From assembly GCF_963921235.1 (NCBI RefSeq), contig NC_086106.1, positions 21,018,001 through 21,082,000 of the forward strand: 64,000 nt of DNA, in the 5' to 3' direction. Source of the stretch: Mobula hypostoma (Eukaryota). Under the pieces are notes generated by a model. The model searched no databases. It saw only the letters and a list, made by a program, of their open reading frames with translations, and was not told the origin of the DNA. Shown one piece after another: positions 11,046-51,100 of the stretch. The first letter of the stretch is position 1. The number at the start of each line of letters is the position of its first letter. The translations under genes were made by a program, and so were the position numbers.

Positions 11046-11448
11046 CCCTCTGTATAGGGTCGACCATGTTTCGATGGATCATGTCTTGCTGCGTGAAAGG
11101 CTTTTAATGTTTGTATACATGCATTTTGTACTGACATTGTCGCAAAGGTAAAGGAAAATTAATTTCTCAGTTAAAATCTCCGGACTCATATTAGAAATGA
11201 TTATAACGTTTACCTTCTAGATCACCAGCGGCCAATTACGTGTAAGATATATCCTTGACTCGTATTTCTTCTTTCTTTAAGAGCCTTGAATCATAGTCGT
11301 CTCCAGATTACATACCAGTGAGACGAACTCTTGTGCTTTCGACTTATAGTTTTATGCCTTGGATGGCCTGACCCGATTATGCAATTTTCGGATTTGTTTA
11401 AAATTCTGCTCACCTGCAATTCAGCGTCTTTATGAAGGGGATGAATAG

Positions 11449-11645
11449 GTGGCGAGACACGGTAGCGTTGTGTTTAACACAACGCTTTACATTATAGAAG
11501 ACTCTGGTTCAATTCTCACCGCTGCCTGTAAGGTATTTGTGTGTTTTTCCCGTCACCACGTGGATTTACTGCAGCTGTTCTAGGCCAAAGTCGTACTAGT
11601 TTGTAGATTAATTTGAGGTTTTAACTTGTCCCCAGATTAGGCTCG
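11449..11645 (+). mobile_element. tRNA-derived elasmobranch SINE (HE1-like), decayed
   Basis: ggcgagacacggtagcg...ggttcaattctcaccgctgcctgtaagg...ttcccgtcaccacgtgg, with A-box-like and B-box-like motifs. Paralog at 28624-28820. Confidence 0.7.
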
Positions 11646-11717
11646 AGCTATAATTAAGAATGCTGGGCAGACTGGCTCGAAGTGCTGAAAGAACCTTCTG
11701 TTCGCTGTTTCGGAATA

Positions 11718-11896
11718 NNNNNNNNNNNNNNNNNNNNNNNNNNNNNNNNNNNNNNNNNNNNNNNNNNNNNNNNNNNNNNNNNNNNNNNNNNNNNNNNNNN
11801 NNNNNNNNNNNNNNNNNNNNNNNNNNNNNNNNNNNNNNNNNNNNNNNNNNNNNNNNNNNNNNNNNNNNNNNNNNNNNNNNNNNNNNNNNNNNNNNN
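11718..11896. other. Assembly gap (179 N)
   Basis: Run of N. Confidence 1.
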
Positions 11897-14800
11897 GGAA
11901 AAGATGATTCATTTTCTGGCTATCCGGAACATTTTTATTTAACGTTCGACTGCCACAAAATTAACGAATCGAGAATTCATATATGTAGCAAGAGAACTAC
12001 ACCAATATTGCAAGTTTTTTACTTACGTAAATATGGCTATACATTCTAGCCTAGAACCTACCGTGGACATACCAGATTTAAAGATACCCAAAACGGATCG
12101 TGATCCAGAACGCTGCCATATGACTAAAGGTGATGGTATGTGTTTCTTTATTAATCCAGGATGTTTTTGACGCGTAACTGTCATTACAGACACATTTATA
12201 TCTAACAGTGAAGGTGTACTCCTTAAATGCATACCGTCTGATTTTCCTCGAGAATATACCTTCGCCAGTTTGGCTGGTATGTACATTCTCCCATAAATTG
12301 AATCGCGCGAGCTGCCAGAAACACTTTGAGATCAACCACGGCAATCTGGTCTCTGGCACTGAATCTGGTTCCGTGGTGCAGAAGGGAAAAAAGAAGATCA
12401 GGAATGAGTTAAGCATTGCGGATTCCATAGTGAGTGGAACTGACAGGAGGTTCTCTCAGCATGATAGAGATACCGGCATGGTGTGTTGCCTCACAGATTC
12501 CAGGGTACAGCATGTCTCGGATCGTGTGCGGAGTATTCTGAAGCGAGGGGCGGAAAAGCCAGGAGTCTTGGTGCACGTTGGTACTAATGATATAGGTAGA
12601 AAAAGAGAGATGGTCCTGAAGAGGGAATGCAGGGAGTTGGTTAGGAAGCTGAAAGGCACGACTTCCAGGGTAGTAATCTCAGGATTGCTGCCAGTGCCAC
12701 ATGCAAGCTAGTGCAAGAATATCATGATCAGGCGTATTAATGTGTGGTCGAGAGACTGGCATCGGGGATAGGGGTTCCGATTCTTAGATTATTGTGACCT
12801 CCTCTGGGGGAGGAACGAACAGTACAAAAGGAACGGTTTACACCTGAACACAAAGGGGTCCAATATCCTGTTGGTACATTTAATACAGCTGTTAAGGGGA
12901 ATTTAAACTAATTTGTCAGGGTGTTGGGAACGGGAATGATCGGGCTGAGCAAGGGGAAGACAGAAATAAGTCAAACATAGCATACAACAGAGATTATAGA
13001 AAGGACAGGTAGAAGATGAGGCTTGATAACAGCTAGTGGCGTGGGTTCGAGGGCAGTAGATGCGTGGTGCTGATAAAATAGAGAACAACAGATACTGGAC
13101 CGAAAGTGTTACATTTGGAAAGCACGCAGCATAAGGAATTAAATGGATAATCTTGTAAATCAGCTACAGATTGGAAAATATGACTTTGTGGCCACCTCTG
13201 AAACTTGGCTAAAGGATGGCACTATTGGGAGCTGAATGTCAAAGGATATACGGGGTATCAGGAAAATAGGTTAGTAGGCAGAGCGTTACTGCGGTACTGT
13301 GTATAAGAAGTAATATTAATTCATTCGAAAGTGATGACGTAGGATTGGAAGGCGTAGAGTTTTAATTGGTTGATTTAAGAAATCGCAAGCGTGAAAGGAC
13401 CCTAATGACAGTTGTATACAGGACTTCAAACAGCAGCCGGATGTGGAGTACAAATTACAGCAGGAATTAGACAAGCCGTGTCAGAAGGCAACATCATGAT
13501 AACCATTGGGGTTTTTAATATGAAGGTGGATTGGACAAACCGGGTCAGACCCTGAACTCAAGAGAGAAAATTGTAGAATGTCTGAGGGATGGCATTTCAC
13601 AGCAGCTTGTTGTTGAGCCAACTAGGGGATCGGATATGCTGGATTGGGCGTTGAGAAATAATCTGGTGATATGAGAGGCTAATGCTTAAGGAACACTGAG
13701 GGACCCGTGATCACAATATAATCGAGTCAACAAGACCAATAGAAACGAACATTTGCAGGAAGGACAGCAGCGGAGCAATGGCTGGAGATTCTGCGAAAAA
13801 TGAGGGAACTGCAAGACAGAAATATTGCAAATAAAAACAACTTTTTAAGGGGAAGATAGACAACACCGTGGCTGACAAGTGAATTCAAGAACCAAAGTAA
13901 AATCAAAAGATAGGCCATACAAGGAAGCTAGAGCTGGTGGGAAGGCAGAGGATTGGAAAGTTCCTAAAAACTTGCAGACTGAAACTAAGGAGGTCACGAG
14001 GAAAGAAAAGATCAATTATGAAAGAAAGCTGGAGACTAATTTCAAAGAAGAAACTAGAAGCTATGTTAAGTATATAAAGGGTAAAAGAGAGTGGAGTGTA
14101 GATATAAGACCAAAACAAAATGACGCTGGAGATATTATAATGGGACTTGCAGAGACGACAGAGGAACTGAATGCGAAATTTGCATCAATATTCACAGTGG
14201 AAGACGTCTCCAGTATACCGGACATTGAAGAGTCTATGGAAGTGAAGTTTGTGCAGTGAAAATTGCGACTGAGAATGTGTTTAAGAATCTTAATGGTCTG
14301 AGGATGGATAAATCTCCTGGACCGGTTGGAATGCACCCTAAGGTTCTGAAGGAAGTAGCTGGAGGATCACAGAGGTAATGACGATGACCATTCAATAATT
14401 GATAGATTCTGGTATTGCACGTGATAACTGGAAAATTGCAATTGTTATTCCGCTGTTTAGGAAGTGTCGAAGGCAGCAGACAGAAAACTAAAGACCTGTT
14501 AGCCTGGCATCAGTGCCTGGGAAGCGTTGGAATTGATTGTTGGTATGAAATTACGAAGTACTTGGATGCAAATGTCAAGATAGACCGAAGCGAAAATGTT
14601 TCTTCTGAAAGGTAAATCCTGACTAACAAACCGCCTGCAATTCTTTGAAGAAAATACAGGCAGGGTAGACAAAGAATATACAGTAGACGTGGTGTTCTTG
14701 GATTTTCAGAAGAACTTTGTCGCACATGGTGCAGCACAGGAAGCTGCTTAGCAAGATAAGAGCCCATAGAATTACAGGGTAGTTACCAACATGGGTGGAG

Positions 14801-17750
14801 CATTGGCTGGTGGGCATAAAACAGAAAATGGGAATAAGGGGATCCTATTCTGGCTGGTTGCCGATTGCCAGTGGAGTTTCACAGGGATTGGTTTTGGGAC
14901 CGCGGCTTTTCACTATGTTACTCAATGAACTGGACAGGGATATTAATGGATTTGTGGCTAAAATTGCCGATGATACAAAGATAGGTACAGGAGCGGGTAG
15001 TCTTGATGAAACAGAGAACCTGCAGAGAGACTTTGATAGTTTAGGGGAACGGGCAAAGAAGTGGCAAGTGAAATACAATGCCGGAAAGTGTATGGTCTTG
15101 ATCATTGGTGGAATAATTAAATTGTGCAGACTATTATTTAGATGGGGAGAATGACTTGAGAGTCATTGTGCAAGATACCCTAAAGGATAACCTCCAGGTT
15201 GAGACAATTTTGAGTAAGGCGAATGCAATATTGACACTGATTTCAAAAGGTGTAGAATATAAAAGCAGGGATGTGATGTTGAGGCTGTATAAGGCACTCG
15301 TGAGACCACAGTTGGAGTATTGTATGCATTTTTCGGCTCCTTATTTTAGAAAGGATATACTGACATTGGAGAGGTTTCACAGGAATGGGAGGGTTACACT
15401 ATGAGGAGTGTCTGGCAGCCCTCGGGCTATATTTCCTGGAATTCAGGAGAATGAGGGGGTACCTCATAGAAACATTCCGAATGTTAAAAGACCTGAATAG
15501 ATTAGATTTTTCAAAGTTATTTCCCATGGTAGGGTATTCTAGGACATGAGGGTACGACATCAGGCTTGAAGGATATTTATTTAGAACTCAGATGCAGAGA
15601 AATTACTTGTCGGAGTGTGGTAAATCTACGGCAATTATTTGCCGCCAGCGGCTGTGGAGGCCAACTTATAGAGTGTATTTTGGGCAGAGATGGATAGTTT
15701 CTTGATTAACCTGGGCATCCAGGGTTATTGGGGTAAAGGCAGTGGAGTGGGAATGACTGAAAGAATAGGATCAGTCAATGATTGAATGGCGGAGCAGAAT
15801 CGATGGGCCGAATAACCTGTATATGCTCCTTTATCTCATGGCGATATGGTCTTATGATTTACGGAGTTAACTAAAGACTGTCGGGAATCTGTTGTTATTA
15901 TCACCGGCAATTTTAACCATGCTACCTGAAAACATGAACTTTCCCTTATTCACCACCACGTCAGCTCATATGGTGTGCAGCTAATACAGTATTCACGACT
16001 ATTTCTGCAGCTTCATTAAAGATGGATTTCATGTCACATGTCGCACTCCGATGGACATTCTGACCACTCTATGATTCAGCTCATTTCTGCATACGAGTTT
16101 TCAGTTTGTAAAAATATGGTCTGATATGTCTAAAGATATATCAGGATTCTGCTTTGATTGCACTGATTTGAACAACTTTAAAAGTAGTAATGAAAGTATT
16201 GATGAATACCTTGATACATTTGCCTCCCATGTTCGCTATCGTGAAGCTGCCTTCTGACCAAATAACGAAATCAGCAAATTTAGCAATACCAAACCTGGTT
16301 CGTCGAAGATCTTAGTTAGCTTCATATGGTGGAGGAGGAACAATACAGAAAGTGGAGACAAAGCTGAGTTCTATATTTCCACTACATGCTGGAGCACGAA
16401 GCCTGAAATGCCAAAGACCAACGTTCAGTCAAACGGGAAACTAAGACTTCTGCAAGTATCTTTTCGTTTGTCCACCAAGTTCCTGTATCTATTACTGATA
16501 AAATAAGAAGTCCCCTCCTCGCCAGATGACCTCTTCCTGCCACTGGTTAAAAGTGATCTACAAACCTCTTTGTATATAGACCAATTATAATGTAGACTTT
16601 TCAAAGGCAGGTTATGTATTTTGTCAAATCGGTAACTCAGAACTTTTCCGATCCGCTGCATTTCGCCAACAGAGCCAGCAGATATGCAAATAATGTAGTT
16701 GACACTGCTATGCACTTCATACTACAGAATATCCTTTCCACTGCTATAAATATCAGGGATTCCCATTCCGATTTCATTTCAGTCTTCAATGCAATATTCC
16801 CTGAACTCCTGCCAGAGAAATGCTCCAATCATATCGTACCGGGCCCCGCCGCAACTTGAACCAAAGCATCCTCCCTGATGGATGCAGAAAGTGAGACTGG
16901 CCACCGACATGTTCACATCCCGCTTATTTAGAACCGTTGGGCGACAATCATGTGTTGAAACCCTCCCCTATTTTCTCCATCCGTCAAAGACAGCACTCCA
17001 GAGATCGACCAATTCAAATCTTAAACTTTGAACGCGGCGTAACTGACATTGGATTCACACTCGAGACATCAAATACAAGTACTGCCAGGAAGTAACGGAT
17101 TCCGGAATGCAGTCAAAACTGTGGAACTGCATATCGATTTGAACAGAAATCAGTCTGCCCTACTCTCATTCAATATTAAAAACTCCACAGTTAGCACCGT
17201 TTCGACATTTAGGTTCTTCCGCATCATTATCTAATGGTGGCTCACGGGGCAGATCCATATTTCCGTTATTATCAAAATAGCTGTGCACAGGATGTATCTT
17301 TTGTAGTATTTTGTAAAATTCCATCTTCCCCAGAGTATGCCCGTGCAATTCTTCACTGCCATTATAGGGAGCGACCTCTCAGTCGCCATTACTGTCCGCT
17401 TCCCTGCGTCATGCACTGACAATATGTGAAAATGACTGCGAACAGACAGGCCAGCAGAAGGATGATGGGCTACAGCCTACCTTGAGAACAGGACATGCAT
17501 GTTCTCGCAAGAACAACGCAGGCAGGAAAAAAAAAGCGCGAACACTATCCACCCAGCAGAATGTTATCCCTAATAAACGACAGAATTAGGAGATTTCAAG
17601 GGAGAAAGCGATCCAATATAAGCACGACTAAAGTGATTGATAGTGTCCGGAGTTCACTCATCTTCAGTGGAAATCCTGTTTACTTTCACCTATTTATACC
17701 CCTGATAATTTTACATACTGCTATCTTCCACGTTCTAAGGGTTTAGTTCG
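11897..17750 (+). mobile_element. Rex1/Babar-type LINE interrupted by a CR1 at about 12345-15855
   Basis: Degenerate EN motifs (K.KG.G.CF.IN, VYI.P, IITGNFNHA) and RT motifs (DPLHFANRA..NNVVDTAMHFILQ, KTVELHID, VSTFRF). Confidence 0.75.
12345..15855 (+). mobile_element. CR1-clade LINE nested in Rex1 (present in both duplication copies)
   Basis: Esterase ORF1 motifs (IADSIVSG, VHVGTNDIG; ORF 12208-12711) and RT motifs (SGVSQGLVLGP, KIADDTK, LYKALVRPQLEYC; 14795-15404). Confidence 0.85.
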
Positions 17751-18460
17751 TTACCCATTCAATCTTTCCATATAACTCAGGTAATCAAGCCCGGAAACCC
17801 CCTTGCAAATCTTTTCTGTACTCATTCGACTTCCTTTACATCTCTCATCTAGGTGGGTGTCCGGAACAGCTCTCAAGACTTCATATTAGGCCTCAGCAGC
17901 GTCCTATCCCACTTCAACGTAACATTTCATTATCTGTGGTACAACATTCAATAAATAATGGACCTGTTGTCCCAGATCACTTTGTGCACTACACTCTTCA
18001 ATGACATACTGTTCGCAGTGTAATTCCCGCACCTGTGTGTAATGAGATCGACCTGTCATTTTCAACTGTTTTTTTGGTCAGTTAGTCCGGCTCCCGCTGC
18101 CAACTCTGGCAATTATTTTCGTTCTCCAGTGTACCATTATTCTTGGAGTTATCGGCAAATTTACTGATCAGGTTAACCAAGTTATCATTGAAATCATTAT
18201 CTAGATGACAAACAAGAACAGACCGAGAACTGATCCGTGCAGCACTCTACTTGTCATCGGACTCCATTCAGAGAAACACCCATTTCCGCTTCTCCCACAA
18301 GGCCAATATCTAATCAAAATAACTATCTTATCTTGAATGGCAAATAACTTAACCTTCTTGAGCAATCTCCCATTGAGAACTTTGCGAAATGCGTGGCTAA
18401 CGTTCATGTAGATAACATTCTCCGCCTTGTCGTTTGCAGTCTTACCCTGAATAATTATTT
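17750..18460 (-). mobile_element. CR1 RT fragment
   Basis: ORF 18201-18407 has GRLLKKVK...SRVLHGSVLGLFLFVI. Confidence 0.65.
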
Positions 18461-19429
18461 TGCACTCACAGCAACATTATCAGTTGTTCAGCATTGCAAA
18501 ATTTGCAAATATATTCGATGATTTCTCCAACGGCTAATTCTTTAAATTTTCGAGGCAATACGTAGGTCAGGTGAGCAACCGGTGTTTACTATATTGCTTT
18601 ACCGTGACCTCTTCCACAACTGTGAGTGCAACGGAGAGCTGAGCATGATAGAGTTCACGTGAGGCATTGGGCGTAATCTCATGAGCTCCTTCTTTATTTT
18701 CTTCATTTAATGTATTTTAGTACTTAAAAAAAAAACAATTTTCTTTGTCAGATTTTTCATTATCGCCCTCATCTCTCTGATCCTTTTCGTCTCGTTATTT
18801 TTTTTCCGTTACTTTTCCTGCCTCATTTGCAATATTGATAAACGTCCTTACCATTTACTTCTCAGTACATTAGCAATAATCCCGCACTTATTTCATTTGA
18901 TTCCGCCATGTCTCCTAAAGATGTAACAATCGGGTTAAATTACTACCGTTGTTTAAACGCTAGGTCAGTAAGTGTTCGTAATGCGGGCGGAAAACAAACC
19001 ACAAGGAAGACAGTAGATGCACACCATAAGTTTTGAGGATAGGATTGAACTGTGCTCAGTGGAATAGCCAAGCAGAAATTCAACTGACTGGGGAATAGTG
19101 CAGCAACCAATATATGACCGTGTTCCAAAGAAGAACTTTCTGAAAATGAAGGATTTTTAATTTCCTTTTACAACTTTATCACATGCATTTTGCACTGACC
19201 TATTTTTGCAACAGCAGAAGAATTTCTGAAGTAGAGTCCTTTGTCTCTAATTCCAAAGTATTGCAGCCTTTATATTCCAGGTCAATAGCGGCCAAGTGGG
19301 GGTGAGACATATCTTAGGCTAGTCTCATTTCTTTCATTAACAGTTTTAATCATTGTCTTCTCCAGATTACATATTAATTTAATGTGTTCCTGTGCTTTCT
19401 GCAAATTGTGATATGCATTGGATCTCCAG

Positions 19430-20290
19430 ACACCATGACGGGATGTTTGGATTTATTTACAAGTCAGCTCACCTGCACTCATGTCATATACTTCTGAGAG
19501 TTCAGGAAGTGCACAGGAAGTCACCAGAGGCCAGTTGGGCTTAGAACAGCGATACTGTAGTCCCTGGAAAGGCTGATTATGGGTCCTCAAATCCATAACT
19601 CAGAATTTTCCAGTTCCGCTGTAATTCGCGACAGAGCCAACGCCACTGCAGATGACGTCGTTAACGTCGGTATGCACTTTATATTTCAGCATATCGATTC
19701 TGCTGATGAATATGTCAGAAATGTCTCTCTCATTTCAGTTCAGCCTTCATTAAAGTCTACTCTTTGCATCTACAAGAGAACGGCTCCAAATTTGCGGTAT
19801 CAGGTCTCATCTGCTGCTTGATCAACAGCATCCCATTTAACAGGGGACAAGACGTGAGACCTAATCCGCACATGACCATATGCCACTGAGCCAGAACCAC
19901 TGCGCTACAGCAACCCGCTCCTATTTTCGCTATATGACAATGACAGCGTTTCAAAAACCGACCTGTTAAACTGATAAGGTTTGCAGACGACACCTCTGTC
20001 ATTGGGATAATATCCAGAGGTGTCGTGCATGTAAATTAACAATCCAGTGTGCTGGTAAAAGCAAAATACCTTGGAGCTGAAAGTCCTCAAAACTGCTGGA
20101 ATGCATTTCGATTTGAAGAGAAATGTGTCTGCTCTTCGCCAACTGATCATCAAAAACGCTACAGGTAGTACCCAATCAACCTCATGGCCCCTGGGCATCA
20201 TTATTACGGAGGATCTAATGTAAGACAGCCATATCTACGTTATTACCAAATGCCTCTGCCCACGATATACTTCTTGTGGCATTTAGTGGA
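19430..20290 (+). mobile_element. Rex1/Babar RT fragment
   Basis: ORF 19579-19821 has RANATADDVVNVGMHFIFQHIDS. Paralog at about 45120-45960. Confidence 0.6.
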
Positions 20291-21457
20291 ATTCAAAGTT
20301 AATTTATGATCAACCCATGCAAATTGAAGTTCTCTTCTCCTTTCAAGTACGACTTCAAAAAAGAAAAAAAAAGCAGCACGATCATCAGCCGCCCCAAAAT
20401 AACTCCTCCCCGCACAAAACACGAACTTAAGGGAACAGGCATATCAATCCCCAAATTCTCTCTCTCTCCGCATAAATAAAAACGAACAAAAACAGAACAG
20501 CCACATCTTCCTTCAAATACCGCCTCCCGCAGAAAATATAAATACTGAGCAAAACGGAACACCCAGATCGACCACACAAAATCCCATACCCCGACCAAAG
20601 ACTCCAACCAAAACGCAACATGCAGAATGACCCGACATTCCTTCTCCCGAGCAAATATGGAACAGGCACGTTGACTCCGAATTGCCCACCCGGCACAAAA
20701 CAAAAAAAAACACAAAATATCGGGGGAAGACCGAGAATATAAATAGCTGTAAGACTGAAAAAAAAAATCTGCAGATAGTTATAGATGGGAAAAAATGCCG
20801 TTACCACTGACACAATGGCGGGTGCATAGGGAGCATGGCCTGAGACTCGGAATCGGCTCCCAGAACTAGAGGAGACATGAACAGGCTAGGGTATGGACTC
20901 CGAGCCCGAGACTGGGCTTGGGTCTTGCCTCGGGCTCGGACCCCAGAACCAGGCATGGACATGACATGGGCTAGGGAGAGGAGGAACATGGGAACACAGA
21001 GCCTCGGTCTCGGGAGAGCAGGTATATGGATCCATGGACACATACCCAGAACACAGAGCCGGGAGCCCTCCTTGGGTACAGGACATAGGGCCGGGACTCA
21101 TGACCCTCCGCGGGGCAACGGCAAGACAGCCTGAACTACCCCACGGAGGCGAGGACAAGACAAGACAAGACAAGACTTGTCTTTCCGTGCAGCAACGACA
21201 AGAGGCCTCACTTACCCCCACGGAGGCGAGGACAGGATAAGATAAGACCAACACGAATGAACACCAGACAGTACCTATCTGGCTCTGGCGATGGAACTAG
21301 ACCGAAGTGCAGGCAGGGGATGTAGACGACGGCTAGAGGCGAGAGGGGCAGAGAAGGGATTCAGATAAGTGGGTAGAACAGGAATCAGAGCGCCAGGGCC
21401 GGGACTCGACTCAGAACTGGGAAGCCGTCAGCTCCATGACTTGATTGGTGCTTGAAT

Positions 21458-21590
21458 GCCGCTGGGCAGGGGACTTGACTAGATGCTTGAATGCCGCCAG
21501 GGCCAGGACTTGACTAGGTGCTTGAATGCCGCAAGGGTCAGGACTTGATTTGGTACTTGAATGCCCCCGGAGCCAGGACTTGACTTGGAG
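21458..21590. repeat. 35-bp minisatellite in LTR-like repeat 1 (4 units)
   Basis: Units start at 21458, 21493, 21528 and 21563. Confidence 0.85.
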
Positions 21591-23040
21591 CCTCCGGGTA
21601 GTGGCGAGGTCTCGACTCGGCCCGGGAACAGTAGACAGTGGTTCTTGATTCCCTCCGGCGGGTTAACTGACGGACCCGCCTCAGTGAGGAAACTTTGCAG
21701 GCTCGCTTTGGCGAGGTAACTGGACAGGGTTGCTCCGGTGAGGAGAGGCGAATTACCGGCACTCGCTCTGCAGAGACTACGCTTGCTCCGGCCAGATGAC
21801 GTCGACACACCGTACCTTAGATGACTTTGCAGACGCTCCCGTGCCGAACGGCTTAATGCAGGGGACTACAAACTACTGATTCAGCCAAGCGTTAATTGCC
21901 TCTATTCACCGAAGTCGAGGGACACGGGAAAACCGGAATCAACGGTCCGGATCGTAGCATAAACAAGGTAAATTTTAAGGGAATCCGATCCGGACCATGA
22001 TAATAGCCCTCTCCTAGTGGGAGCCTCCATGCGACCAAGAGATTTGCCTGTATTTTCGATGACCCGGTTGGGTGGGGGGTATTTGGCCGGCGGGCAAACC
22101 AGAACAACAACACTTTGACTTTCAGGCTGACGACAGTTTGTAAAAACACTTTGTGTTTGCTGGGTCCATTTTTGGCGAGAGCGTTATGTCACAATAGCGG
22201 GAGCACAGGTGGCAAGGGTGGACACAAATGCAAGACACATATTGTGAGGTTATTTAAATATAGTTTATTGTTCAATATCAGGAGAGCTAGGTAGGAGCAG
22301 GAGTAGCGAACTGGACAAGGATTGAGGACTACGACTAGGCTGGGACCAAGGGTCTGGACTAAGACTCGGAATCGGATCCCAGAACCAGAGGAGACATGAA
22401 CAAGCTAGGGTATGGACTCCGAGCCCGAGACTGGGCAAGGACTCAGTAGCTGGGAATTGTATCGGGCTCGGACCCCAGAACCAGGCATAAACATGTCATG
22501 GGCTAGGCTGAGGAGGAACACCGGGACACAGAGCCTCGGTCTCGGGAGAGCAGGTCCATGGAACCATGGACAAATACACAGTACACAGAGTCGGGGCCCC
22601 TCCTTGGGTACAGGACATAGGGCCGGGAGTCACACACAGAACAGAGAGCCGGGACGCCTCATTGGGTACAGGACATAGGGCCGGGGTCATCACCCTCCGC
22701 GGGGCAACGGCAAGACGGCCTCACTTACCCCACAGAGGTAAGGACAGAACAAGACATGACTCCGCGCGGGGCAACAGCAAGACGGGCAGACTTACCCCCA
22801 CGGAGGCGAGTACGAGACAAGACAAAACCAACACGAATGAACACCGGACAGTACTTATCTAGCTCCGGCGATGGATCTAGACCGAGGTGAAGGTGGGGGC
22901 TGCAGACGAGAGATAGAGGCGAGAGGGGCAAAGAAGGGATTCAGACAAGGGGGTAGAACAGGAATCACAGACCTCCAGGGCCACGATTCGACTCAGAACT
23001 CGGAAGCCATTACGCCCAGGACATTACGTGGTGCTTGGAT

Positions 23041-23385
23041 GCCGCCAGGGCCAGGACCTGACTTGGTGCCTGGATGCCGCCAGGACCAGGATTTGACTGG
23101 GTGCTAGAATGCCGTCAGGGACAGGACTTGACTAGGTTCTAGAATGCCGCCAGGGCCAGGACTTGATTGCGTGCTAGAATGCCGCAAGAGACAGGACTTG
23201 ACATGGTGCCAGAATGCGGCCGGGGCCAGGACTTGACTTCGCGCTTGAATGTCGCCAGGGCCAGAACTTGACTTGGCGCTAGAGTGCCGGCAGGGCCAGG
23301 ACTAAATTTGATGATAGAATGCCGCCAGGATCAGGACTTGACTTGCTGTTTGAATGCCGCCAGGGCCAGGACTTGGCTTGGAGCC
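23041..23385. repeat. 35-bp minisatellite in LTR-like repeat 2 (10 units)
   Basis: Consensus gccgccagggccaggacttgacttggtgctagaat. Units start every 35 bp from 23041 to 23356. Confidence 0.9.
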
Positions 23386-24324: not shown

Positions 24325-24363
24325 AGTTTTTGTACAGCAACAGATGGACGTCAACACACCGTG
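24325..24363 (-). other. 23-bp-spacer recombination signal sequence of V1
   Basis: Heptamer CACGGTG (24363-24357), exactly 23 nt of spacer, nonamer ACAAAAACT (24333-24325). Confidence 0.95.
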
Positions 24364-24667: not shown

Positions 24668-24754
24668 CTTAAATAAAAAGGTGATATCAGTGCTAAGTTG
24701 GAAGGTCGTTAATAATATGGAAACGTAATAGATTTAAAGCCAGACCAGACTTAC

Positions 24755-24794
24755 CGAATAACGTCCATAATACAACGAGAACAGGGAGAGACAT
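24755..24794 (-). CDS. V1 leader exon (MSLPVLVVLWTLF)
   Basis: ATG at 24794, hydrophobic signal peptide, G|GTAAGT donor, and an 87-nt intron that splices in frame to the V exon. Confidence 0.9.
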
Positions 24795-27427: not shown

Positions 27428-27428
<1 letters not shown>

Positions 27429-40600: not shown

Positions 40601-43425
40601 AATATTAATGGATTTGTGGCTAAAAATGCCGATGATACAAAGATAGGTAGAGGAGCGGTAGTCTTGATGAAACAGAGAACCTGCAGAGAGACTTTGATAG
40701 TTTACGGGGACAGGCAAAGAAGTGGCAAGTGAAATACAATGCCGGAAAGTCTATGGTCTTGATTATTGGTGGAAAAATTAAATGTGCAGACTATCATTTA
40801 GATGGGGAGGATGAATTGAGAGTCAATGTGCAAGATATCTTAAAGGATAACCTCCAGGTTCAGACAATTGTGAGTAGGGCGAATGCAATATTGACACTGA
40901 TTTCTAAAGGTGTAGAATATAAGAGCAGGGATGTGCTGTTGAGGCTGTATAAGGCACTCGTAAGACCACAGTTGGAGTATTGTGTGCCGTTTTCGGCTCC
41001 TTATTTTAGAAAGGATATACTGACATTGGAGAGGTTTCAGAGAAGAACAACAGGAATAGAAGGGTTACACTATCAGGAATGTCTAGCAGCCCTCGGGCTA
41101 TATTTCCTGGAATTCAGGAGAATCAGGAGGTACCTCACAGAAACATTCCGAATGTTAAAAGGCATGAATAGATTAGATATTTCAAGGTGTTTTTTTTTTT
41201 CTTGTCTTCACATGGTAGGGTATTCTAGGACATGAGGGCACGACATCAGGCTTGAAGGATATCTATTTAGAACTGAGATGCAGAGAAATTACTTGTCGGA
41301 GTGTGGTAAATCTACGGAAATTATTTGCCGCCAGCGGCTGCGGAGGCCAACTTATAGTGTGTATTTTGGGCAGAGATGGATAGTTTCTTGATTAACCTGG
41401 GCATCCAGGGTTATTGTGCTAAAGGCAGAGGAGTGGGAATGACTGAAAGAATAGGATCAGTCAATGATTCAATGGCGGAGCAGAATCAATGGGCCGAAAA
41501 ACCTGTATCTGCTCCTTTATCTTATGGCGATGTGCTCTTATGATTTACGGAGTCAGCTAAAGCCTGTCGGAACTCTGTTGTTATTATCACGGGCAATTTT
41601 AAACATGCTACCTGAAAACACGAAATTCCCTTTTTCACCACCACGTCAGCTGTAATGAGTACAGCTAATACAGTATTCTGGACTATTTCTGGAGCCTGAT
41701 TAAAGATGGATTTCATGTTACATGTCGTACTCCTTTGGACATTCTGACCACTCTATGATTCAGTTCATTTCTGCATACGAGTTTTCAGTTTGTAAACATA
41801 TGGTCTGATATGTCTAAAGATATATCAGGATTCTGCTTTGATTGCACTGATTTGAACAACTTTAAAAGTAGTACTGAAAGTATTGTTGAATACATTTATA
41901 CATTTGCCTCCCATATTCGCTATCGTGTGATGCCTTCTGACCAAATAACGAAATCAGCAAATTTAGCAATACCAAACCTGGTTCGTCGAAGATCTTGGTC
42001 AGCTTCGTATGGTGGAGGAGGAACCATACAGAAAGTGGAGACAAAGCTCAGTTCTAAATTGCCAGTACATGCAAGAGCAGGAAGCCTGAAATGCCAAAGA
42101 CCAAAGTTCAGTCTAACGGGAAACTAAGACTTCTGCAAGTATCATTTCGTTTGTCCACCAAGTTTTTCTATCTATTACTAATACAAGAAGAAGTCCCGTC
42201 CCCGCCAGATGACCTCTTCCTCCTACTGGTTAAACGTGATCTGCAAACCTCTTTGTATATAGATCAGTTATAATGTAGACGTTTCAAAGGCAGGTTATGT
42301 CTTTTGTCAAATCGATAACTCAGAACTTTTTCAGATCCGCTGCATTTCCAACAGAGCCAGCAGATATGCAAATAATGTAGTTGACACTGCTATGCACTTC
42401 ATACTACAGAATATCCTCTCCACTGCTATAAATATCAGGAATTCCCATTCCGATTTCATTTCAGTCTTCAATGCTACATTCCCTGAACTCCTGTTAGAGA
42501 AATGCTTCAAACATATCGTACCGGGCCCCACCGCAACTTGGCCCAAAGCATCCTCCCTGACGGGTGCAGAAAGAGAGACTAGACACAGACATGTTCACAT
42601 CCCGCTTATTTAGAACTGTTGGGCGACAAACATGTGTTGTAACCCCTCCCCTATTTTCTCCATCCGTCAAAGACAGCACTCCAGAGATCGACCAATTCAA
42701 ATGTTAAACTTTGAACGCGGCATAACTGACATTGCATTCAACTCGAGACATCAAATACAAGTACTGCCAGAAAGTAAAGGATTCAGGAATGCAGTCAAAA
42801 CTGTGGAACTGCATATCGATTTGAACAGAAATTAGTCTGCCCGACTCTCATTCAATATTAAAAACTCCACAGTTAGCACAGTTTCGACATATAGGTTCAT
42901 CGACATCATTATCTAATGGTGGCTCACGTGGCTGATCCATACTCCGTTATTATCAAAATGGTTGTGCACAGGATGTATCTTTTGCAGTATTTGGTAAGAT
43001 TCCATCTTCCCCAGAGTATGCCCGTGCAATTCTTCACTGCCGTTATAGAGAGCGACCTCTCAGTCGCCATTACTGTCCGCTTCCATGCGTCATGCACTGA
43101 CAATATGTGAAAACGACTGCAAACAGACAGGCCAGCAGAAGGATGATGGGCTACAGCCTACCTTGAGAACAGGACGTGCATGTTCACACGAGAACAACGC
43201 AGGCAGGAAAAACAGCGCGAACACTTTCCACCCAGCAGAATGTTATCCCTAATTAACGACAGATTTAGGGGGTTTCAAGGGAGAAAGCGATCCTCTATAA
43301 GCACGACTAAAGTGAATGATAGTGTCCGGAGTTCACTCATCTTCAGTGGAAATCCTGTTTACTTTCACCTATTTATACCCCTCATAATTTTACATACTGC
43401 TATCTTCTACGGTGTAAGGGTTTAG
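37619..43425 (+). mobile_element. Rex1/Babar LINE with nested CR1 (about 37995-41545), copy-2 paralogs of 11897-17750
   Basis: Collinear with copy 1. ORFs 38050-38403 (esterase), 40472-41235 (CR1 RT) and 42392-43110 (Rex1 RT). Confidence 0.8.
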
Positions 43426-43429
43426 GTCC

Positions 43430-44120
43430 TTACCCATTCAATCTTTCCGAATAACTCAGGTAATCCAGCCCGGAAACACCCTTGCAAATCTTTTGTGTAC
43501 TCATTCAACTTCCTTTACATCTCTCATCTTGGTGGGTGTCCGGAACAGCTCACAAGACTCCATATTAGGCCTCAGCAGCGTCCTATCCCACTTCAACTTA
43601 ACATTCCATTATCTGTGATACAACATTCAGTAAATAATGGACCTGTTGTCCCAGATCACTTTGTGCACTACTCTCTTCAATGACATACCGTTCGTAGTGT
43701 AATTCCCGCACCGGGGTGTAATGAGATCGACCTATCATTTTAAACTTTTTTTTCAGTTTGTCCGGCTCCTGCTGCCAACTCTGGTAATTATTTTCGTTCT
43801 CCAGTGTACCATTCTTCTTGGAGTTGTCGGCAAATTTACTGATCAGGTTGACCAAGTTATCATTGAAATCAGTATCTTGATGACAAGCAAGAACAGACCA
43901 AGCACTGATCCGTGCAGCACTCTACTTGTCATCGGGCTCCATTCAGAGAAACACCTATTTCCGCTTCTCCCACAAGGCCAATATCTGATCCAAATAACTA
44001 TCTCATCTTGAATGCCAAATAACTAAACCTTCTTGAGCAATCTCCCATAGGGAACTTTGCGAAATGCGCGGCTAACATTCCATGTAGATAACATTCTCTG
44101 CCTTGTCGTTTGCAGTCTTA
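43430..44120 (-). mobile_element. CR1 RT fragment, paralog of 17750-18460
   Basis: ORF 43598-43855 has ISKFADNSK. Confidence 0.65.
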
Positions 44121-47100
44121 TCCTGATTAAATATTTTGCACTCACAGCAACATTGTTAGTTGTTCAGCATTGCAAAATTTGCAAATATATACAATGGTTT
44201 CTCCAAAGGCTAATTCTTTAAATTCTCGAGGCAATACGTAGGTCAGGTGAGCAACCGATTTTCACGATATTGTTTTACTGTGAGGTCTTCTACAACTGTG
44301 ACTGCAACGGACAACTGAGGATAATAGTTGGAGTTCAGGTGAGGAGTTGGGCGTATCCTCATGAGCTCCTTCTTTATTTCTTCACCTTATGCATTTTAGT
44401 ACTTTAAAAAAAAACGTAATTTCCTTGTCACGTTTTTCATTATCGCCCTCATCTCTCTCGTCCTTTTCCTGTCGTGATGTTTTTCCCGTTACTTTTCCTT
44501 CCTCATTTACAATATTGCGAAAACGTCCTTACCATTTACCTCTTAGCGCATTGGCACTAATCCCGCGCTTATTTCATTTGATTCCGCCATTTCTCTTAAA
44601 GATTTAACAATCGGTTTAAATTACTGTCGCTGTTTAAACCCTTGGTCAGTAAGTGTTCATAATGCGGGCGGAAAACAAACCACTAGGAAGAGAGCAGATG
44701 CACACCATAAGTTTAGAGGAGAGGATTGAATTGTACTCAATGGAATAGCCAAGCAGAAATTCATCTGACTGGGGAATTGTGCAACGACCAATATATGACC
44801 GTGTTCCAAAGGAGTACTTCCTGAAATTAAAGGATTTTTAATTTCCTTTTACAAATTGATTACATGCATTTTGCACTGACCTAATTCTGCAACGTTTGAA
44901 GAAGAAGAATTTCTGAAGTAGAATATTTGTCCGTAATTCCAAAGTATTGCAACCTTTATATTTCAGATCAATAGCGGCCAAGTGGGGGTGAGACATATCT
45001 TAGACTAGTGTCACTTCTTTCAATAACAGTTTTTATCATTGTCTTTTCCAGATTACATATTAATTCGATGTGTTCCTGCGCTTTCTGCAAATTGTGATAT
45101 GCATTGGATCTCCAGACACCATGGCGGGATTTACGGATTCATTTACCAGTCTGTTCACCTGCACTCAAGCCATTCACTTCGGGGAGTTTAGGAAGTGCAC
45201 AAAAAGTGACCAGAGACCAATTGGACTTAGATCAACGATATTGCAGTCTCTGGAAAGGCTGATTATGGTACCGATCGAATCCATAACTCAGAATTTTCCA
45301 GTTCCGCTGTAATTCGCTACAGAGCCAACGGCACTGCAGATGACGTCGTTAACGTCGGTATACACTTCATACTTCAGCATATGAATATGTCAGAAAAGTC
45401 TCTGTCATTTCCGCTCAGCCTTCATTAAAATCTACTCTTTGCGTCAGCAAGAGAACGGTTCCAAATTTACTGTATCAGGTCTCATCTGCTACTTGAGCAA
45501 CAGCAACCCCTTTGACAGGGGGCAAGACGTGAAACCTAATAGGCATATGACCATATGCCGCTAAGTCAGTACCTCTGCGCTACAGCAACCCGTTCCTATT
45601 TTCTCTATATAACAATGACAGCGTTTGAAAATCCGATCTGTTAAACTGATAAGGTTTGCAGACGACACCTCTGTCATTGCGATGATATCCAGAGGCGTAG
45701 ACTATGGAAGTAAACAATCCAGTGCGTTGGTAAAAGCAAAACACCTTGGAGCTGAAAGTCCTCAAAACTACGGGAATGCATATCGATTTGAAGAGAAATG
45801 TGTCTGCTCTTCACCAACTGATCGTCAAAAACGCTACTGGTAGAACCCAACCAAGCCGTTAGCCCCTGGGCATCATTATTACGTAGGATCTGATGTAAGA
45901 CAGCCATATCTGCGTTATTGGCAAATGCCTCTGCCCACGGTATATTTCTTGCGGCATTTAGTAGAATTCAAAGTTAATTTATTATTAACGCATGCAAATT
46001 GAAGTTCTCTTCTCCTTTAAGGTACGATATCAAAAAATAAAATAAGGCAGTACGATCATCAACCGCCCCAAAATAACTCCTTCCCGCACAAAACACGAAC
46101 TAAAGGGAACAGGTAGATCAAACCCCAAATCCTCTTTCTCCGCATTAAAAAATGCGAACAAAAACGGAACATTCTCATCTACCTTCTGATAACTCCTCCC
46201 GCAGAAAAAAAACAAACGAACAAAACGGAACACTGAGATCGACCACACAAAATCCCATTCCCCGACCAAAGACTCTAACAAAAACGCAACATGCAGAATG
46301 ACCCGAAAATCCTTCTCCCGAGCAAATATGGAACAGGCACGTTGTCTCCGAATTCTCCACCCGGTACTAAAAAGAAAGAAAGAAAGAAAAGAAACATCGA
46401 GGGGAAACAGCATTAAGACTGAAAATATCTGCAGGTAGGTATAGATGGGGAAAATGCTGTTTCCTCTGAATGTTACAATTTATGTCCTGGAATGTATAGA
46501 CATAATGCGGTTTGACTTTTTTCCAACAGATCAGATTGACGGAACATGTTGTTCGACAGTGTGTAGCTGAGCTATGAGGGAGTAGATGATTTGTGTAGGC
46601 TTGCCATGAGACATTAAAGGATGTTTCTTTAATAGATTGCACACCAGGGAAATATTAACGGTTTCAGCGTCATTTCCCACACATTTTACCCGTCATGCAA
46701 ATTCGTAGCTGGCCTAACAATAGTCAAAACCAAGGTACGACGCGATTATAGTTAGTCCAGAATTCGGGGATTTCAGGAGATGAAGAACGAAAAGATAACA
46801 TAAGTCCGCCTGGCGTAAATAACTATTGATTCGTTATTAAACGTAAACTTTCAGGAATATGTTGTTTTGTTTATTAACGCCTTTTCTAATAACTGTTGCA
46901 GTGCCTGCAACTGGGTAGCAAATTAAATCCCAAGAGCTGCATCAAAGAGCAATCCGACTATCAGCTCTTGGCGTATTGGGGTAAATGAAGTCAGGCAACT
47001 CAGGAAGTGGACATAAGGTCTTGAGCGCAAAGTGTGTGTGCTGCTGGGTGTAGCGATTTTCTTAACTAACTACATCTATCAGTGAGACCGATTGATGATA

Positions 47101-47149
47101 TGTGGGTTTCTATGCCAGCTCGATTGCTTGTGGTTGCACTTTCTCATTT

Positions 47150-47188
47150 AGTTTTTGTACAGCAACAGATGGAGCACAATATACCGTG
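47150..47188 (-). other. 23-bp-spacer RSS of V2
   Basis: Heptamer CACGGTA (47188-47182), 23-nt spacer, nonamer ACAAAAACT (47158-47150). Confidence 0.9.
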
Positions 47189-47492
47189 ACTCTCATTGCA
47201 CAGAAGTAAAGCCCGGAGTCCAGGATATCTGCACGTTTGATTGTTAATGGTATATTCTTCGCGTCGTTGGTCTGGTCCGCCTCGATCTTTCCCTTTGCAA
47301 AATCCGCATCTTCTCTGTCATTGTTATCCCGGTATAATATAAAGCGCAGGGGCTGATTATTTTGATGTTGATACCAATATAGATCCGGGTTGCGTTGACT
47401 AGTTCTGTAGCTACACTCTATTTTCACATCATCACCTTCCACCACGTCCAACGCGTCCTGGGGCTGTGTCACCGAATCTCCCTGAATATGTA
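47189..47492 (-). CDS. TCR alpha/delta-type V segment 2, V exon
   Basis: Acceptor tgtttcag, phase 1. Reads (V)HIQGDSVTQP...IECSY...LYWYQH...DSGLYFCAMR, an open frame with canonical Cys, Trp and Cys. Confidence 0.92.
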
Positions 47493-47579
47493 CTGAAACA
47501 ATAGGGTGAAATCAGTACTGAGTTGGAAAGCTGCTAATAACATGGAAACGTAATAGATAGAGAGCCAGATCAGACTTAC

Positions 47580-47619
47580 CGAATAACGTCCATAATACAA
47601 CGAGAACAGGGGAAAACAT
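47580..47619 (-). CDS. V2 leader exon (MFSPVLVVLWTLF)
   Basis: ATG at 47619, G|GTAAGT donor, 87-nt intron, in frame with the V exon. Confidence 0.9.
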
Positions 47620-50600
47620 GTATTTGATTGTGACTTTACTAACAATGTACAACGATAGCTCTTCTTGTATCTGAAAAAAAAACAGCACAATGATACTCTA
47701 CGTGAAATAACGAGACTTAAACCCAATTCAAGGGAGGGGCGGTGCAACAGAAGGTGAGGTTTTAAATATCAAGACAACGAACTCAGATCACTGGAAAGAA
47801 AACTCTGACCTCAATTACACATCACGTCGGTTCGTCATCCTGAGCGGCAGTCATATGTACAATTGGCATTGGGCGCCACCTAATCTAGGCGGAGTTATAT
47901 CTCAGCAGTTTATGTCTCCCACGCCTATCGCCACCAATCACCGTCAGGGAAAAATAAATAATAAGTTTTATTTTTCATTGTGAAATGGTACACGTATGGA
48001 CCTGTTTTCCACTTGGAAAACGAGTAAGGGAAACCTATACGGCCCATAATGTTTGGCATAGTGAGGGTGAACACAAAAATGAAATTATGAACGGGAAACT
48101 AAAATAATAAAATAATTTGAAAGGCGTGGAAGCAAACAAACCAAGGAAAGGACTCGCGATATGATGTTTCTCTCATCCGGCTGCCCAGCTTTGTTACTCC
48201 AGTGTTAATATTAAAATATCGCTCGGTGCTGCAGAGTTTAATGGTCAGTCAGATGGAGCTTGATCCACAGTTGCCGACCACGTGATGAATCTGCCACCAC
48301 AATGCCTTAAAAACAAAAGAAAGTAATGTATGAGGTTCAACGAAGTCGTAAAAAAACGAAATGAAATAAATAAATAAACAAACAAACTTACCTCCGCAGT
48401 GATGACGTGTTTGGAAAAATTGGCGATTGAAGATATCATCTCTTGCCTCAGAAATAACCTGCATCCTCGTCAGTTTGCCTCCTGTCACAACGTGTCTACA
48501 ACAGATGCTTTTTCATTTGCTCTTGAGTTAACAGAGCGACATCTTTTAGCAGGAGAAATGCATTCACCTGGATGGTATTTACCGACTAATGCTCGGTATT
48601 ACATGCTATAATCCTGTGAAATCTAATCAATAAACTACAACAAATTGGCCTCGATATCTCCCTGTGCAGGTGGATGTTCAATATCATCATTTGCAGATCG
48701 CAGTCCAATCGAATTGGCAAAACCATCTGTTCCGCAATTTCCATCGGCACTGATATACCACAAAGCTGAATGGTTTTCCCCTGATCTACTGGTTTTACAC
48801 ATACGGCTGTAAGGTGACGGATAGCTGTAGTGCCATGTTTTAAATTTATCTTTGATGACGACGCACTGTATTTGACCAAGTCAAAGTTAGTGAGGTTCAG
48901 TACACAGGGGCAAGATTGATGACCTGGGTGAGTCGCACATCAGCGACAACCTCTCACGCAATGTCAGCGCGAATAAGGAGCTGATTAGTGACTTCACCCG
49001 CAGGAAGCTGAACGACCGTTAGCCTGTCCTTTTCAGAGGTGGAGAGGGCAGCAACTCTAATTTCCTTCGTCTTGTAAGGTCAGGAGATCTATGTGTTAAA
49101 AGGAAGAAAGCAACGCAGCGTCTCGACTGCCTTAGATGTTTGCGAAGATTTGATATGACATCTAAAATTTGGACAGACATTTGCAGCTATTAGATTGAAA
49201 GTATATTGACAGGTTGTATCACAACCTGGCATGGAAACACCAGTGCCTCTGATGGAAAAATCCTACACAAGTAGACGATGCGGATCAGTCTATCACGGGC
49301 GAAGCCCCTTCCCTACCACTGAACATATGTACACGCAACGGTGTCGCAGGAAAGCAGCATCCTATATCATGGACTCTCATAACAAACACCATGATTCCGG
49401 CTTGCTGCTAATGTCAGAAAAATGGGTACAGGAGCATCAGGACACACATCACCCGGTTCATATACAGTTATTAAACCACAACAACAGGATCCTGAACCGG
49501 AAGAGATAACGTCACTAAACTTTAGATATTGCTATTAGAACAACGTATACACTATTCAGTCGCACAATTTTGTTTTTTAATTTTTGTTTTTTGTATTGTG
49601 TTCAGTAGTAGTAAGGATCGGTTGTAATAATCGGTGTCTAACTTTAATCCATTCAGGCTTGTATCTATAGCAAGGTATGATGTATTTCGTTTATGTTGTA
49701 AAGCAAGGCTTTTGTGAATGATGGTATTATTATTATAATAATAATTATTATTATTTTGTCTTTTGCATACTGGTTGTTTTCCCGTCCTGTTGAGGCCGGT
49801 CCTTCATTGATTCTGTTGTGTTTTTGGATTTACTCCGTATGCCCTCTGTGTGTCGTACATGGGATTTGAAAATTACTCTAATTTACATTTTGACTAAATG
49901 CTAGAGAACAAATTGTAGCGCGTGATATAATTAAACATGCGCCAACTAAGTTATGGCCGTACTGCTGGAAAAAAATAAAATCCGTAACGTAGGTATGTGT
50001 TTCAACCTTTAATGGTGCGACCCTGCTGAATTCCCCTGTATGTTCTGCAAAGCCGGCATATCATTTTTGTATTAGCCAGATAGAATTGAATATGAAACTG
50101 CTTGTGACTTGCAGTATGACTTCCTAATTTTGAAACAGTATCCGAGCGGCGAAGGAAATCATGCCATGTGCTTTCTTTACCATCCTAACTACTTGTATTG
50201 CCACTTTCGGGTACCTTATGGGCTTTGTCACTAAGATCATTCAGGACGTGTTTTCGAAAGTGTCATCTTGTTTACCGTAGGAATTTCCCATACATGTGCC
50301 CTCCGACAGTGTACTGTAACTGAATTGAACTTTATTTTCGATTTGTCACCTGTAACTGCAAACGATCCATACGTTGATGTATACTTAGAAAATCTTTCTC
50401 TCTCTATCCACGAATACATCAATGCTTGTGTCATATGCAAGGGTGATAATTAGCCCTTCTACAATGGATACACTCTGTCTTCTGGCACCACCACTGTGGC
50501 TAAGGGGATACAAATTAATTCGAGTCCTTGCAATCTTTCATTGTGACTCAACTAATAACCTGGGGTAAATTCCATTGATCCCCATTCTTGACTTCCTTAT

Positions 50601-51100
50601 CCTTTCTTTCGTACAGGTTCATGATGTTCCTTATTTGCAATTAACATGTTTAAACCATTGCCATGCGACAAATCAGTCCTTGCCTAATAGCAGCAGCTCC
50701 CAGATTTCTCTTCGTTGCTCTTGTCTAATTGCATTTCCCCAATTAAGCGCCCCCCCCTCCTTATTCCAGCCTTATATTTATTAATAGCTATCTTAGGATA
50801 TAAATATGTACGTCGATCCGCTTATTTTCTGATAACTTAAATCTCGCTGGGTAACGAACCTGCCGTGCCTTTAATTCATTATTTTTTTTTCCAGCTTGTC
50901 AACAAAATAGCCTATTTTGACGTTAAGTACATCCCACTGGATTAAACAAATTAAACATGAAAGTGTTGCATATGTTGCAATTAACAACTTTTATGATGCA
51001 AAATAAATTCTCCCTCCAGAGGTTTAATAGGGGTTTAAGTAAACGTTCTTCAGGGATTATTCAAAGGTTCAACCAAAACTGCAGATCGTGCTTATAGAAT

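Follow-up and report, generated by a model that had tools for sequence, protein, structure and literature searches.

How a T cell receptor (TCR) V gene multiplies in a locus crowded with transposable elements is a question raised by the window analysed here, a 64-kb stretch of the genome of the ray Mobula hypostoma, for which amplification of a V cassette by head-to-tail tandem duplication had been proposed. The self-comparison and global alignment suggested as a check on this proposal (self-BLAST and MAFFT, 64-kb window) revealed two colinear copies of one unit, arranged head to tail. Copy 1 (11346–28521, plus strand) comprises 17,176 bp including copy-specific blocks, and copy 2 (28522–50802, plus strand) measures 22,281 bp with its LINE insert of 8.45 kb; the difference in length is due to the copy-specific blocks. 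Matched blocks identified by self-BLAST are 11346–11717 with 28522–28892 (91.7% identity), 11897–11983 with 29077–29163 (87%), 11984–20810 with 37625–46469 (89%), and 23790–28524 with 46467–50802 (82–88%). The MAFFT alignment contains 13,363 columns shared by the copies, with 89% identity (K2P 0.118); the common unit of ~13.4 kb aligned plus ~0.18 kb masked sequence fits the ~14 kb originally predicted. Homology between the copies stops at 50802, as indicated by the alignment and by local alignments of the flank, and self-BLAST detected no third unit in the 64-kb window. The tandem duplication of the V cassette, borne out by this colinearity and by the letters at the junction, is thus supported as genuine and old.

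On the minus strand of each copy lies an intact V gene, composed of a leader, an 87-nt intron, a V-set exon and a 23-spacer recombination signal sequence (RSS); a V gene with an RSS in each unit had been predicted originally. In V1, the leader exon (24755–24794, minus strand; MSLPVLVVLWTLF, phase 1, GT donor) precedes a V exon (24364–24667, minus strand) which encodes a V-set domain with Cys, Trp and a YFCAMS end (Pfam V-set, E = 1.6e-17), followed by the RSS (24325–24363, minus strand; CACGGTG, 23-nt spacer, ACAAAAACT). The corresponding elements of V2, likewise on the minus strand, are the leader exon at 47580–47619 (MFSPVLVVLWTLF), the V exon at 47189–47492 (Pfam V-set, E = 3.1e-15; 79% amino acid and 90% nucleotide identity to V1), and the RSS at 47150–47188 (CACGGTA with position 7 changed, 23-nt spacer, ACAAAAACT). 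The split leader of both genes consists of a 40-nt exon with a GTAAGT donor, the 87-nt intron and an AG acceptor, and joining of the exons restores the reading frame. Both proteins show the C27, W40 and YFC residues of a TRAV/TRDV V-set domain, and in both copies the 23-nt-spacer RSS directly follows the V exon. Both heptamers depart from the consensus at position 4, and that of V2, which ends in A rather than G, does so at position 7 as well. The only canonical CACAGTG/CACTGTG RSS is a cryptic plus-strand site (24860–24897) in the putative V1 promoter region, and it has no conserved counterpart in copy 2. A core-like TAGGTGGCGC element occurs upstream of V1 and V2. A search for the CTCF consensus gave no match at ≤1 mismatch near V1/V2, and when the 64-kb window was searched by tblastn with both V proteins, neither an additional V gene nor the remnant of one was detected.

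The nearest named relatives of the two genes are TRDV3 and TRAV, the top named matches being coelacanth and turtle TRDV3, with 54% identity of the V protein to coelacanth TRDV3. Best matches in the PDB include human Vdelta3 and TCR alpha chains, with antibody V domains scoring close behind; kinship to TRAV/TRDV rather than to IG or TRB/TRG is indicated by these top matches. With the TRDV3-type V genes (coelacanth H3AJY3; human Vdelta3 1tvd, 7lli), which are the best named matches, the ray genes share the V-set domain, the 23-nt spacer and the YFCA end, but identity to tetrapod TRDV3 is only ~40%, and the two ray genes are putative relatives of this type. Differences between V1 and V2 are concentrated in CDR1 and CDR2, and dN/dS, which rests on 30 substitutions, is 0.66 overall, 1.2 in the CDRs and 0.5 in the frameworks. 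The chance of both frames staying open without selection is ~0.03, as roughly estimated from the observed indel and stop rates. Each unit includes a complete V gene, with shared flanks that extend ~3.7 kb upstream and >3 kb downstream, and both genes persist. The only hint of expression comes from a small run of 143 Mb, possibly RNA, in which 46% of the V2 exon words occurred; a run from another organism contained 12%. Judged by their sequence, both V gene copies look usable. The human TRA/TRD locus has roughly one V gene per 15 kb. The notion that one V gene per 17–22 kb represents a very low density had to be given up, as the ray locus is not unusually sparse compared with bovine TRA/TRD, where ~371 V genes occupy ~3.3 Mb (PMC4289303).

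Shared versus copy-specific insertions provide the order of events, as had been anticipated. Among the transposable elements of the window, jockey-like LINE reverse-transcriptase fragments were identified (RVT_1, Exo_endo_phos; Pfam, ESM Atlas), and the originally proposed labels Rex1, CR1 and SINE are putative. An 8.45-kb LINE composite (29164–37618), present in copy 2 only, is flanked by a target-site duplication of ATGTAG or up to 10 bp and comprises a minus-strand RT fragment of jockey-like type (29291–30418) together with a plus-strand EN+RT LINE in three frames (33010–36576); LTRs or inverted repeats were not found in this insert. Since copy 1 keeps the empty site (11975–11983) and the insert is bounded by the target-site duplication, the insertion occurred later than the duplication. 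A GC-rich block of 2.98 kb (20811–23789), which contains minisatellites of 35 bp and, internally, direct repeats of ~1 kb, is restricted to copy 1, either by insertion into copy 1 or by loss from copy 2. Copy 1 also contains ~0.5 kb of smaller copy-specific pieces, and copy 2 has 152 bp of its own (46920–47071), located 77 bp past the V2 nonamer, with the direct repeat GCTAC(A)CCCAG at its boundaries. Searches with ARAGORN and Rfam for a tRNA-derived SINE head gave no matches in the window outside the masked stretches.

The junction between the copies lies at 28521|28522. In a three-way alignment, the sequence left of 28522 follows the end of copy 2, whereas that to the right follows the start of copy 1; ATA (28519–28521, plus strand) is common to the left flank, the junction and the copy 2 end. 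Zero extra bases were inserted at the junction, and the alignment revealed neither filler nor inverted pieces. Direct head-to-tail copies with one novel adjacency are what characterizes a non-homologous tandem duplication. The quoted junction letters and the ATA overlap are therefore confirmed by sequence and alignment, but the claim that the duplication was microhomology-mediated goes further than the overlap allows. Of random joins in this window, 5.6% share at least 3 bases (P = 0.056) and a fraction of 0.018 shares at least 4; an overlap of 3 bp thus exceeds chance only marginally, and ATA does not discriminate between end joining and a template switch during replication. Its length is 3 bp or possibly 4, as the overlap may originally have been TATA; overlaps of 0–4 bp are compatible with classical end joining, MMEJ and template switching alike.

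Divergence between the copies varies threefold along the unit, forming tiers: the left part has a divergence of ~0.11, the middle one of 0.07 and the right one of 0.135. The low-divergence tract (13848–18566, partner 39511–44242) shows p = 0.073, compared to 0.128 elsewhere, with a log-likelihood ratio (LLR) of 50.7 versus a maximum of 9.8 in 100 permutations, and non-CpG sites give the same pattern. That this inner tract of ~4.7 kb is half as diverged as the remainder suggests later gene conversion. The tiers would also be consistent with a two-step or complex event, in which either a larger or different duplication, whatever its mechanism, later lost sequence through a deletion spanning the junction, or the right part with the V gene was duplicated before the left; a larger duplication trimmed by a junction deletion would, moreover, look identical. 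We regard such a history as unlikely, as later gene conversion or a mutation rate that differs between regions accounts for the tiers equally well, the junction is clean, and one junction with strict colinearity across the unit is most simply the result of one event. Given the threefold variation, a single simple history of the unit is nevertheless an approximation. A shark-based clock would place the duplication at about 50–100 million years ago.

Non-allelic homologous recombination (NAHR) between two copies of one transposable element family, with the homology since eroded, is an obvious candidate in a unit full of LINE fragments. The original prediction that neither outer breakpoint lies in a shared repeat holds insofar as the two breakpoints have no repeat in common; the left one, however, is located inside an interspersed repeat of ~300 bp (TE-X; 11116–11418, plus strand), which is 68% identical to 19181–19479 and 44861–45165, and another copy of which thus resides within the unit. 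The breakpoint at 11346 cuts this repeat such that only its last ~75 bp were duplicated (28522–28596). NAHR requires paralogous direct repeats and leaves a chimeric repeat at the junction, but the right breakpoint is outside any TE-X copy, the repeat is found at the left breakpoint only, and the junction carries just the 3′ 75 bp of TE-X joined to unrelated sequence; the stretch to the left of the junction (28300–28521, equivalent to 50580–50802) does not resemble the 5′ portion of TE-X. Smith-Waterman alignments of the outer flanks with the matching inner unit ends, performed at 300, 600 and 1000 bp on both strands with shuffled controls, gave scores of 16–24, compared to shuffled means of 18–23 and 388–1192 for the positive control, so that over 300–1000 bp no extended similarity between the two parental breakpoints rises above shuffled sequence. 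This makes unequal crossover between repeats unlikely. As repeats with only 68% identity are detectable here, a repeat suitable for NAHR should have visibly survived ~11–15% further divergence, and we consider this origin of the duplication very improbable. The junction is resolved to the base and lacks extended homology.

A read-derived contig covering 28261–28584 spans the junction with 0 differences, is supported by four runs, and has the same depth as its neighbours, as expected for single-copy sequence. The reads of these four runs are from one sample, probably the assembly's own, and were assembled as short de Bruijn contigs, not long reads. In the run index, the junction region gave matches from Mobula hypostoma only. 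Each copy is interrupted by a run of Ns (11718–11896 in copy 1, 28899–29070 in copy 2) in positionally homologous places. Because the flanks are colinear (the offset between the copies is 17176 before and 17180 after the N runs), the lengths of 179 and 172 agree between the copies to within 5 bp, and a read-derived contig extends 48 letters beyond 28898 into the N run of copy 2, the runs look like masks of a homologous piece of ~180 bp rather than gaps of unknown size. An assembly artefact, such as a haplotype duplicated in error or a false join next to the N runs, might be suspected from the location of these runs ~375 bp into each copy and from the single sample behind all supporting reads, but is ruled out because the copies differ at 11% of the sites and by insertions on the kilobase scale that are private to one copy, a target-site duplication flanking one of them, which goes far beyond the allelic level; the independent contig across the junction and the colinear N runs likewise argue against it.

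The history we favor, with a probability of about 0.75, is a single non-homologous head-to-tail duplication of a TRDV3-like V cassette, followed by divergence, insertions and probable gene conversion, with both V genes kept. An ancestral segment of ~14 kb in the TCR alpha/delta region, made up mostly of old LINE debris and one TRDV3-like V gene, would have been duplicated once, head to tail, by a non-homologous join of its end (now 50802) to its start (11346) with the 3–4-bp overlap. End joining of sister-chromatid breaks or a replication template switch may have produced the join, and the outcome fits either. Afterwards, the copies diverged by ~11%, with copy 2 gaining the LINE composite and the 152-bp piece and copy 1 coming to possess its 3-kb minisatellite-rich block and smaller pieces, and gene conversion probably made the inner tract uniform again. 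Leader, splice sites, open frame, Cys/Trp/Cys and 23-RSS have been retained in both V genes, with CDR1 and CDR2 drifting apart. Given these intact features in both copies, the TCR-delta/alpha repertoire most likely gained one usable V segment through the duplication.

Duplication of homology units is known from the bovine TRA/TRD locus, where the smallest units are ~15 kb (PMC4289303), similar to the size of the ray unit. As in IG/TR loci evolving by birth and death, a V-bearing block was replicated in tandem; with time such copies become different in sequence, acquire insertions or shed them, and either remain functional or degenerate. In contrast to the bovine case, the ray unit has a single V gene, only two replicons and a batoid host, and its junction is readable to the base and free of repeat homology, whereas the bovine assembly is fragmented. 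The ray event also resembles non-recurrent tandem duplications with microhomology junctions, for which NHEJ, MMEJ and FoSTeS/MMBIR classes are distinguished (reviewed in PMC3597517), in its head-to-tail orientation, the absence of extended breakpoint homology, and a 3–4-bp overlap without filler. However, unlike these fresh copy number variants, it is ancient, fixed in the germline and read after ~11% divergence, and its junction lacks templated insertions or complex joints that would point to MMBIR. In the collection of papers searched, none was found that deals with the TCR loci of Mobula or with elasmobranch V-duplication junctions read to the base.

A wider reading, which we offer tentatively and consider possible but rather doubtful, is that, in this ray TCR alpha/delta region crowded with transposable elements, new V genes arise mostly when a cassette with a single V is duplicated in tandem by a non-homologous join, multi-kilobase gene conversion between cassettes coming later, with base-level junctions remaining readable for 50–100 million years because the elasmobranch clock is slow. 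If so, the TCR alpha/delta locus would constitute a dated archive of V-gene births that has been lost from mammalian loci. Growth of V families by such unit duplication is well documented, and the ray case, clean but ordinary, leaves our knowledge of V-gene evolution unchanged. It does provide a clean worked example of V-family growth in a cartilaginous fish, in which the event, the junction, the order of later insertions and CDR divergence are all legible in one window, and it illustrates that a setting rich in transposable elements need not force crossover mediated by them. The V1/V2 pair is predicted to be common to other mobulids and probably to the wider myliobatiform rays.

Self-BLAST and a finer copy-versus-copy BLAST revealed a single long head-to-tail repeat in the window, comprising copy 1 (11346–28521; 17,176 bp) and copy 2 (28522–50802; 22,281 bp). 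The matched blocks pair 11346–11717 with 28522–28892 (91.7% identity), 11897–11983 with 29077–29163 (87%), 11984–20810 with 37625–46469 (89%), and 23790–28524 with 46467–50802 (82–88%); MAFFT alignment over these blocks yielded 13,363 aligned columns with 89.1% identity (K2P 0.118). The three comparisons confirm the tandem duplication of a V gene cassette, and the shared unit agrees with the proposed size of about 14 kb, whereas the interpretation given in the original prediction was supported in part. Divergence at 11% of sites, together with kilobase-scale insertions private to one copy or the other, excludes an assembly artefact. Over the whole unit, the differences between the copies comprise nearly as many transitions as transversions (0.054 and 0.055 per site), a low ratio for vertebrate neutral DNA, and sites in CpG context differ at 25%, as compared to 9.7% elsewhere. 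The word depth of read-derived contigs rises from about 15 to 80–770 at 26433–26479 and 27420–27593, very high-copy short repeats common to both copies.

Each copy contains an N run which begins about 375 bp into the copy (11718–11896 and 28899–29070, respectively). Since the copy-to-copy offset in the BLAST alignments is 17176 before and 17180 after the N runs, their flanks are colinear and their lengths equal to within 5 bp, a difference of about one ordinary indel (77 gap openings in 13.4 kb of the MAFFT alignment). Homologous positions and nearly equal lengths indicate that the two N runs conceal the same element; they have the properties of deliberate masks over a homologous piece of about 180 bp rather than of gaps of unknown length. 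A read-derived contig runs 48 letters past 28898, into the N run of copy 2.

In a three-way alignment, the left flank ends in GACTTATA and continues with GTTTTATG, the junction (28521/28522) joins TAGAAAATA to GTTTTATG, and the end of copy 2 reads TAGGATATA followed by AATATGTA. ATA is present in all three contexts, and the alignment contains no filler bases at the junction. Immediately before ATA, both parental sequences have a T where the junction has an A; the overlap may thus have been TATA originally. A 324-base Logan contig (28261–28584) spans 28522 with no differences and with the word depth of its neighbours; the Logan contigs derive from four runs of one sample, probably the assembly's own animal, and thus support the raw data rather than providing independent confirmation. 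The proposed 3-bp overlap is real, but at least 3 shared bases occur at 5.6%, and at least 4 at 1.8%, of joins between random position pairs of this window. It is therefore suggestive only, and compatible alike with classical end joining, MMEJ and replicative template switching, the classes set out in PMC3597517.

Unequal crossover between repeats would require homology at the outer breakpoints. The left breakpoint (11346) indeed cuts an interspersed repeat of about 300 bp (11116–11418; 68% identical to 19181–19479 and 44861–45165), only the last ~75 bp of which went into the duplicated unit. However, the sequence that abuts the junction from the left (28300–28521, equivalent to 50580–50802) is unrelated to this repeat. 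When the left outer flank was aligned by Smith-Waterman to both unit ends, and the right outer flank to both unit starts (300, 600 and 1000 bp, both strands), the scores of 16–24 equalled those of shuffled sequence (means 18–23), as compared to 388–1192 for the positive control. Unequal crossover is thus unlikely, and the earlier argument against a TE-mediated event is backed by these scores; the accompanying claim of no shared repeat stands in that the breakpoints share none, although the left one lies inside a repeat. About 1.7 kb to the right of the right breakpoint (50802) starts a rhodopsin-type 7TM receptor reading frame (52494–53468, plus strand; Pfam 7tm_1, E = 1.2e-06, below the curated cut-off), which is probably a pseudogene, judging from an in-frame stop (53097–53099) and a preceding (CT)n run.

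As proposed, shared and copy-specific insertions order the events. Elements found in both copies predate the duplication, among them a jockey-like LINE (12336–15813; RT 14641–15555), an RT fragment (18085–18425) and the ~300-bp repeat at 19181–19479. An 8.45-kb LINE composite (29164–37618), consisting of a jockey-like RT fragment (minus strand) and an EN+RT LINE (plus strand) whose ORF2 is now in three frames, is confined to copy 2; its ends carry a target-site duplication of ATGTAG, or at most ATATATGTAG, its empty site is retained in copy 1, and it entered after the duplication. A further 152 bp found only in copy 2 lie just beyond the V2 RSS. Private to copy 1 are smaller pieces of about 0.5 kb and a 2.98-kb GC-rich block (20811–23789; 51–53% GC) with 35-bp minisatellite arrays (21434–21585, 23016–23381) and internal direct repeats of about 1 kb (21041–22004 and 22631–23796), in which neither a Pfam match nor a clear target-site duplication was found.

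Divergence is about 0.11 in the left part of the unit and 0.135 in the right part. The best two-breakpoint partition delimits a tract of LINE debris at 13848–18566 (partner 39511–44242), about half as diverged as the rest (p = 0.073 versus 0.128; LLR 50.7, whereas 100 permutations reached at most 9.8). Divergence changes abruptly near 18.4–18.6 kb, and the pattern persists at non-CpG sites. This unevenness may reflect regional differences in rate or a history of two steps, but later gene conversion between the cassettes, which we suspect, is the simplest reading.

On the minus strand, each copy has a single V gene (V1 and V2, respectively), composed of a leader exon (24794–24755; 47619–47580), an 87-nt intron (GTAAGT...AG in V1), a V exon (24667–24364; 47492–47189), and an RSS with the heptamer CACGGTG in V1 and CACGGTA in V2, a 23-nt spacer and the nonamer ACAAAAACT in both (24333–24325; 47158–47150). 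The exons code for V-set domains (Pfam E = 1.6e-17 and 3.1e-15). The named sequences closest to them are coelacanth TRDV3 (54%) and the TRDV3 of a turtle (40%); top PDB matches include a TCR alpha chain as well as human Vdelta3 chains (1tvd, 7lli), with antibody V domains close behind. The exons share 90% nucleotide and 79% amino acid identity, with dN/dS, based on 30 substitutions, of 0.66 overall, 0.5 in the frameworks and 1.2 in CDR1+CDR2. Given the neutral indel and stop rates of this window, the chance of both frames staying open is estimated at about 3%, so that both genes have probably been maintained. A weak hint of expression is that 46% of the V2 exon words occur in a small 143-Mb run that is guessed to be RNA. 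A tblastn search with both V proteins found no further V gene or relic within the window.

Two short blocks on the minus strand are identical in both copies. The 29-nt block CTAGATTAGGTGGCGCCCAATGCCAATTG (25035–25063; 47860–47888), about 240 nt upstream of the start codons, includes the CTCF-core-like TAGGTGGCGC and a CCAAT box, but does not match the full CTCF consensus; the 28-nt block AATGAGAAAGTGCAACCACAAGCAATCG (24296–24323; 47121–47148), directly past the nonamer, matches a CTCF-like consensus at only 9 of 14 positions. A patch about 90–175 nt past the V1 RSS (24150–24237; 46823–46910) is identical at 84 of 88 positions, versus ~87% nearby, an excess that is not significant once the number of windows compared is allowed for.

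The cassette fits two known classes. Growth of V repertoires by duplication of "homology units" has been described as a common feature of IG/TR loci, with bovine TRA/TRD units from about 15 kb upward (PMC4289303), and the ray cassette likewise is a V-bearing block copied in tandem. It also belongs with non-homologous tandem duplications that have an overlap of a few bases, which are germline copy-number changes of a standard type (PMC3597517). Distinctive are only the batoid host, the single V gene per unit, and a junction still readable at base level; against mammalian TRA/TRD loci, one V per 17–22 kb, proposed as a very low density, does not stand out as sparse. Whale-shark versus zebra-shark dS of 0.061–0.111 over about 50 My (PMC13100897) corresponds to 0.6–1.1e-9 substitutions per site per year per lineage. 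At this rate the duplication dates to about 54–98 My (K2P 0.118), or about 70–125 My from the least-homogenised right part (K2P ~0.15), order-of-magnitude estimates, as the clock is taken from sharks and ray rates may differ. At such an age, the V1/V2 pair would be expected in taxa well beyond the genus.
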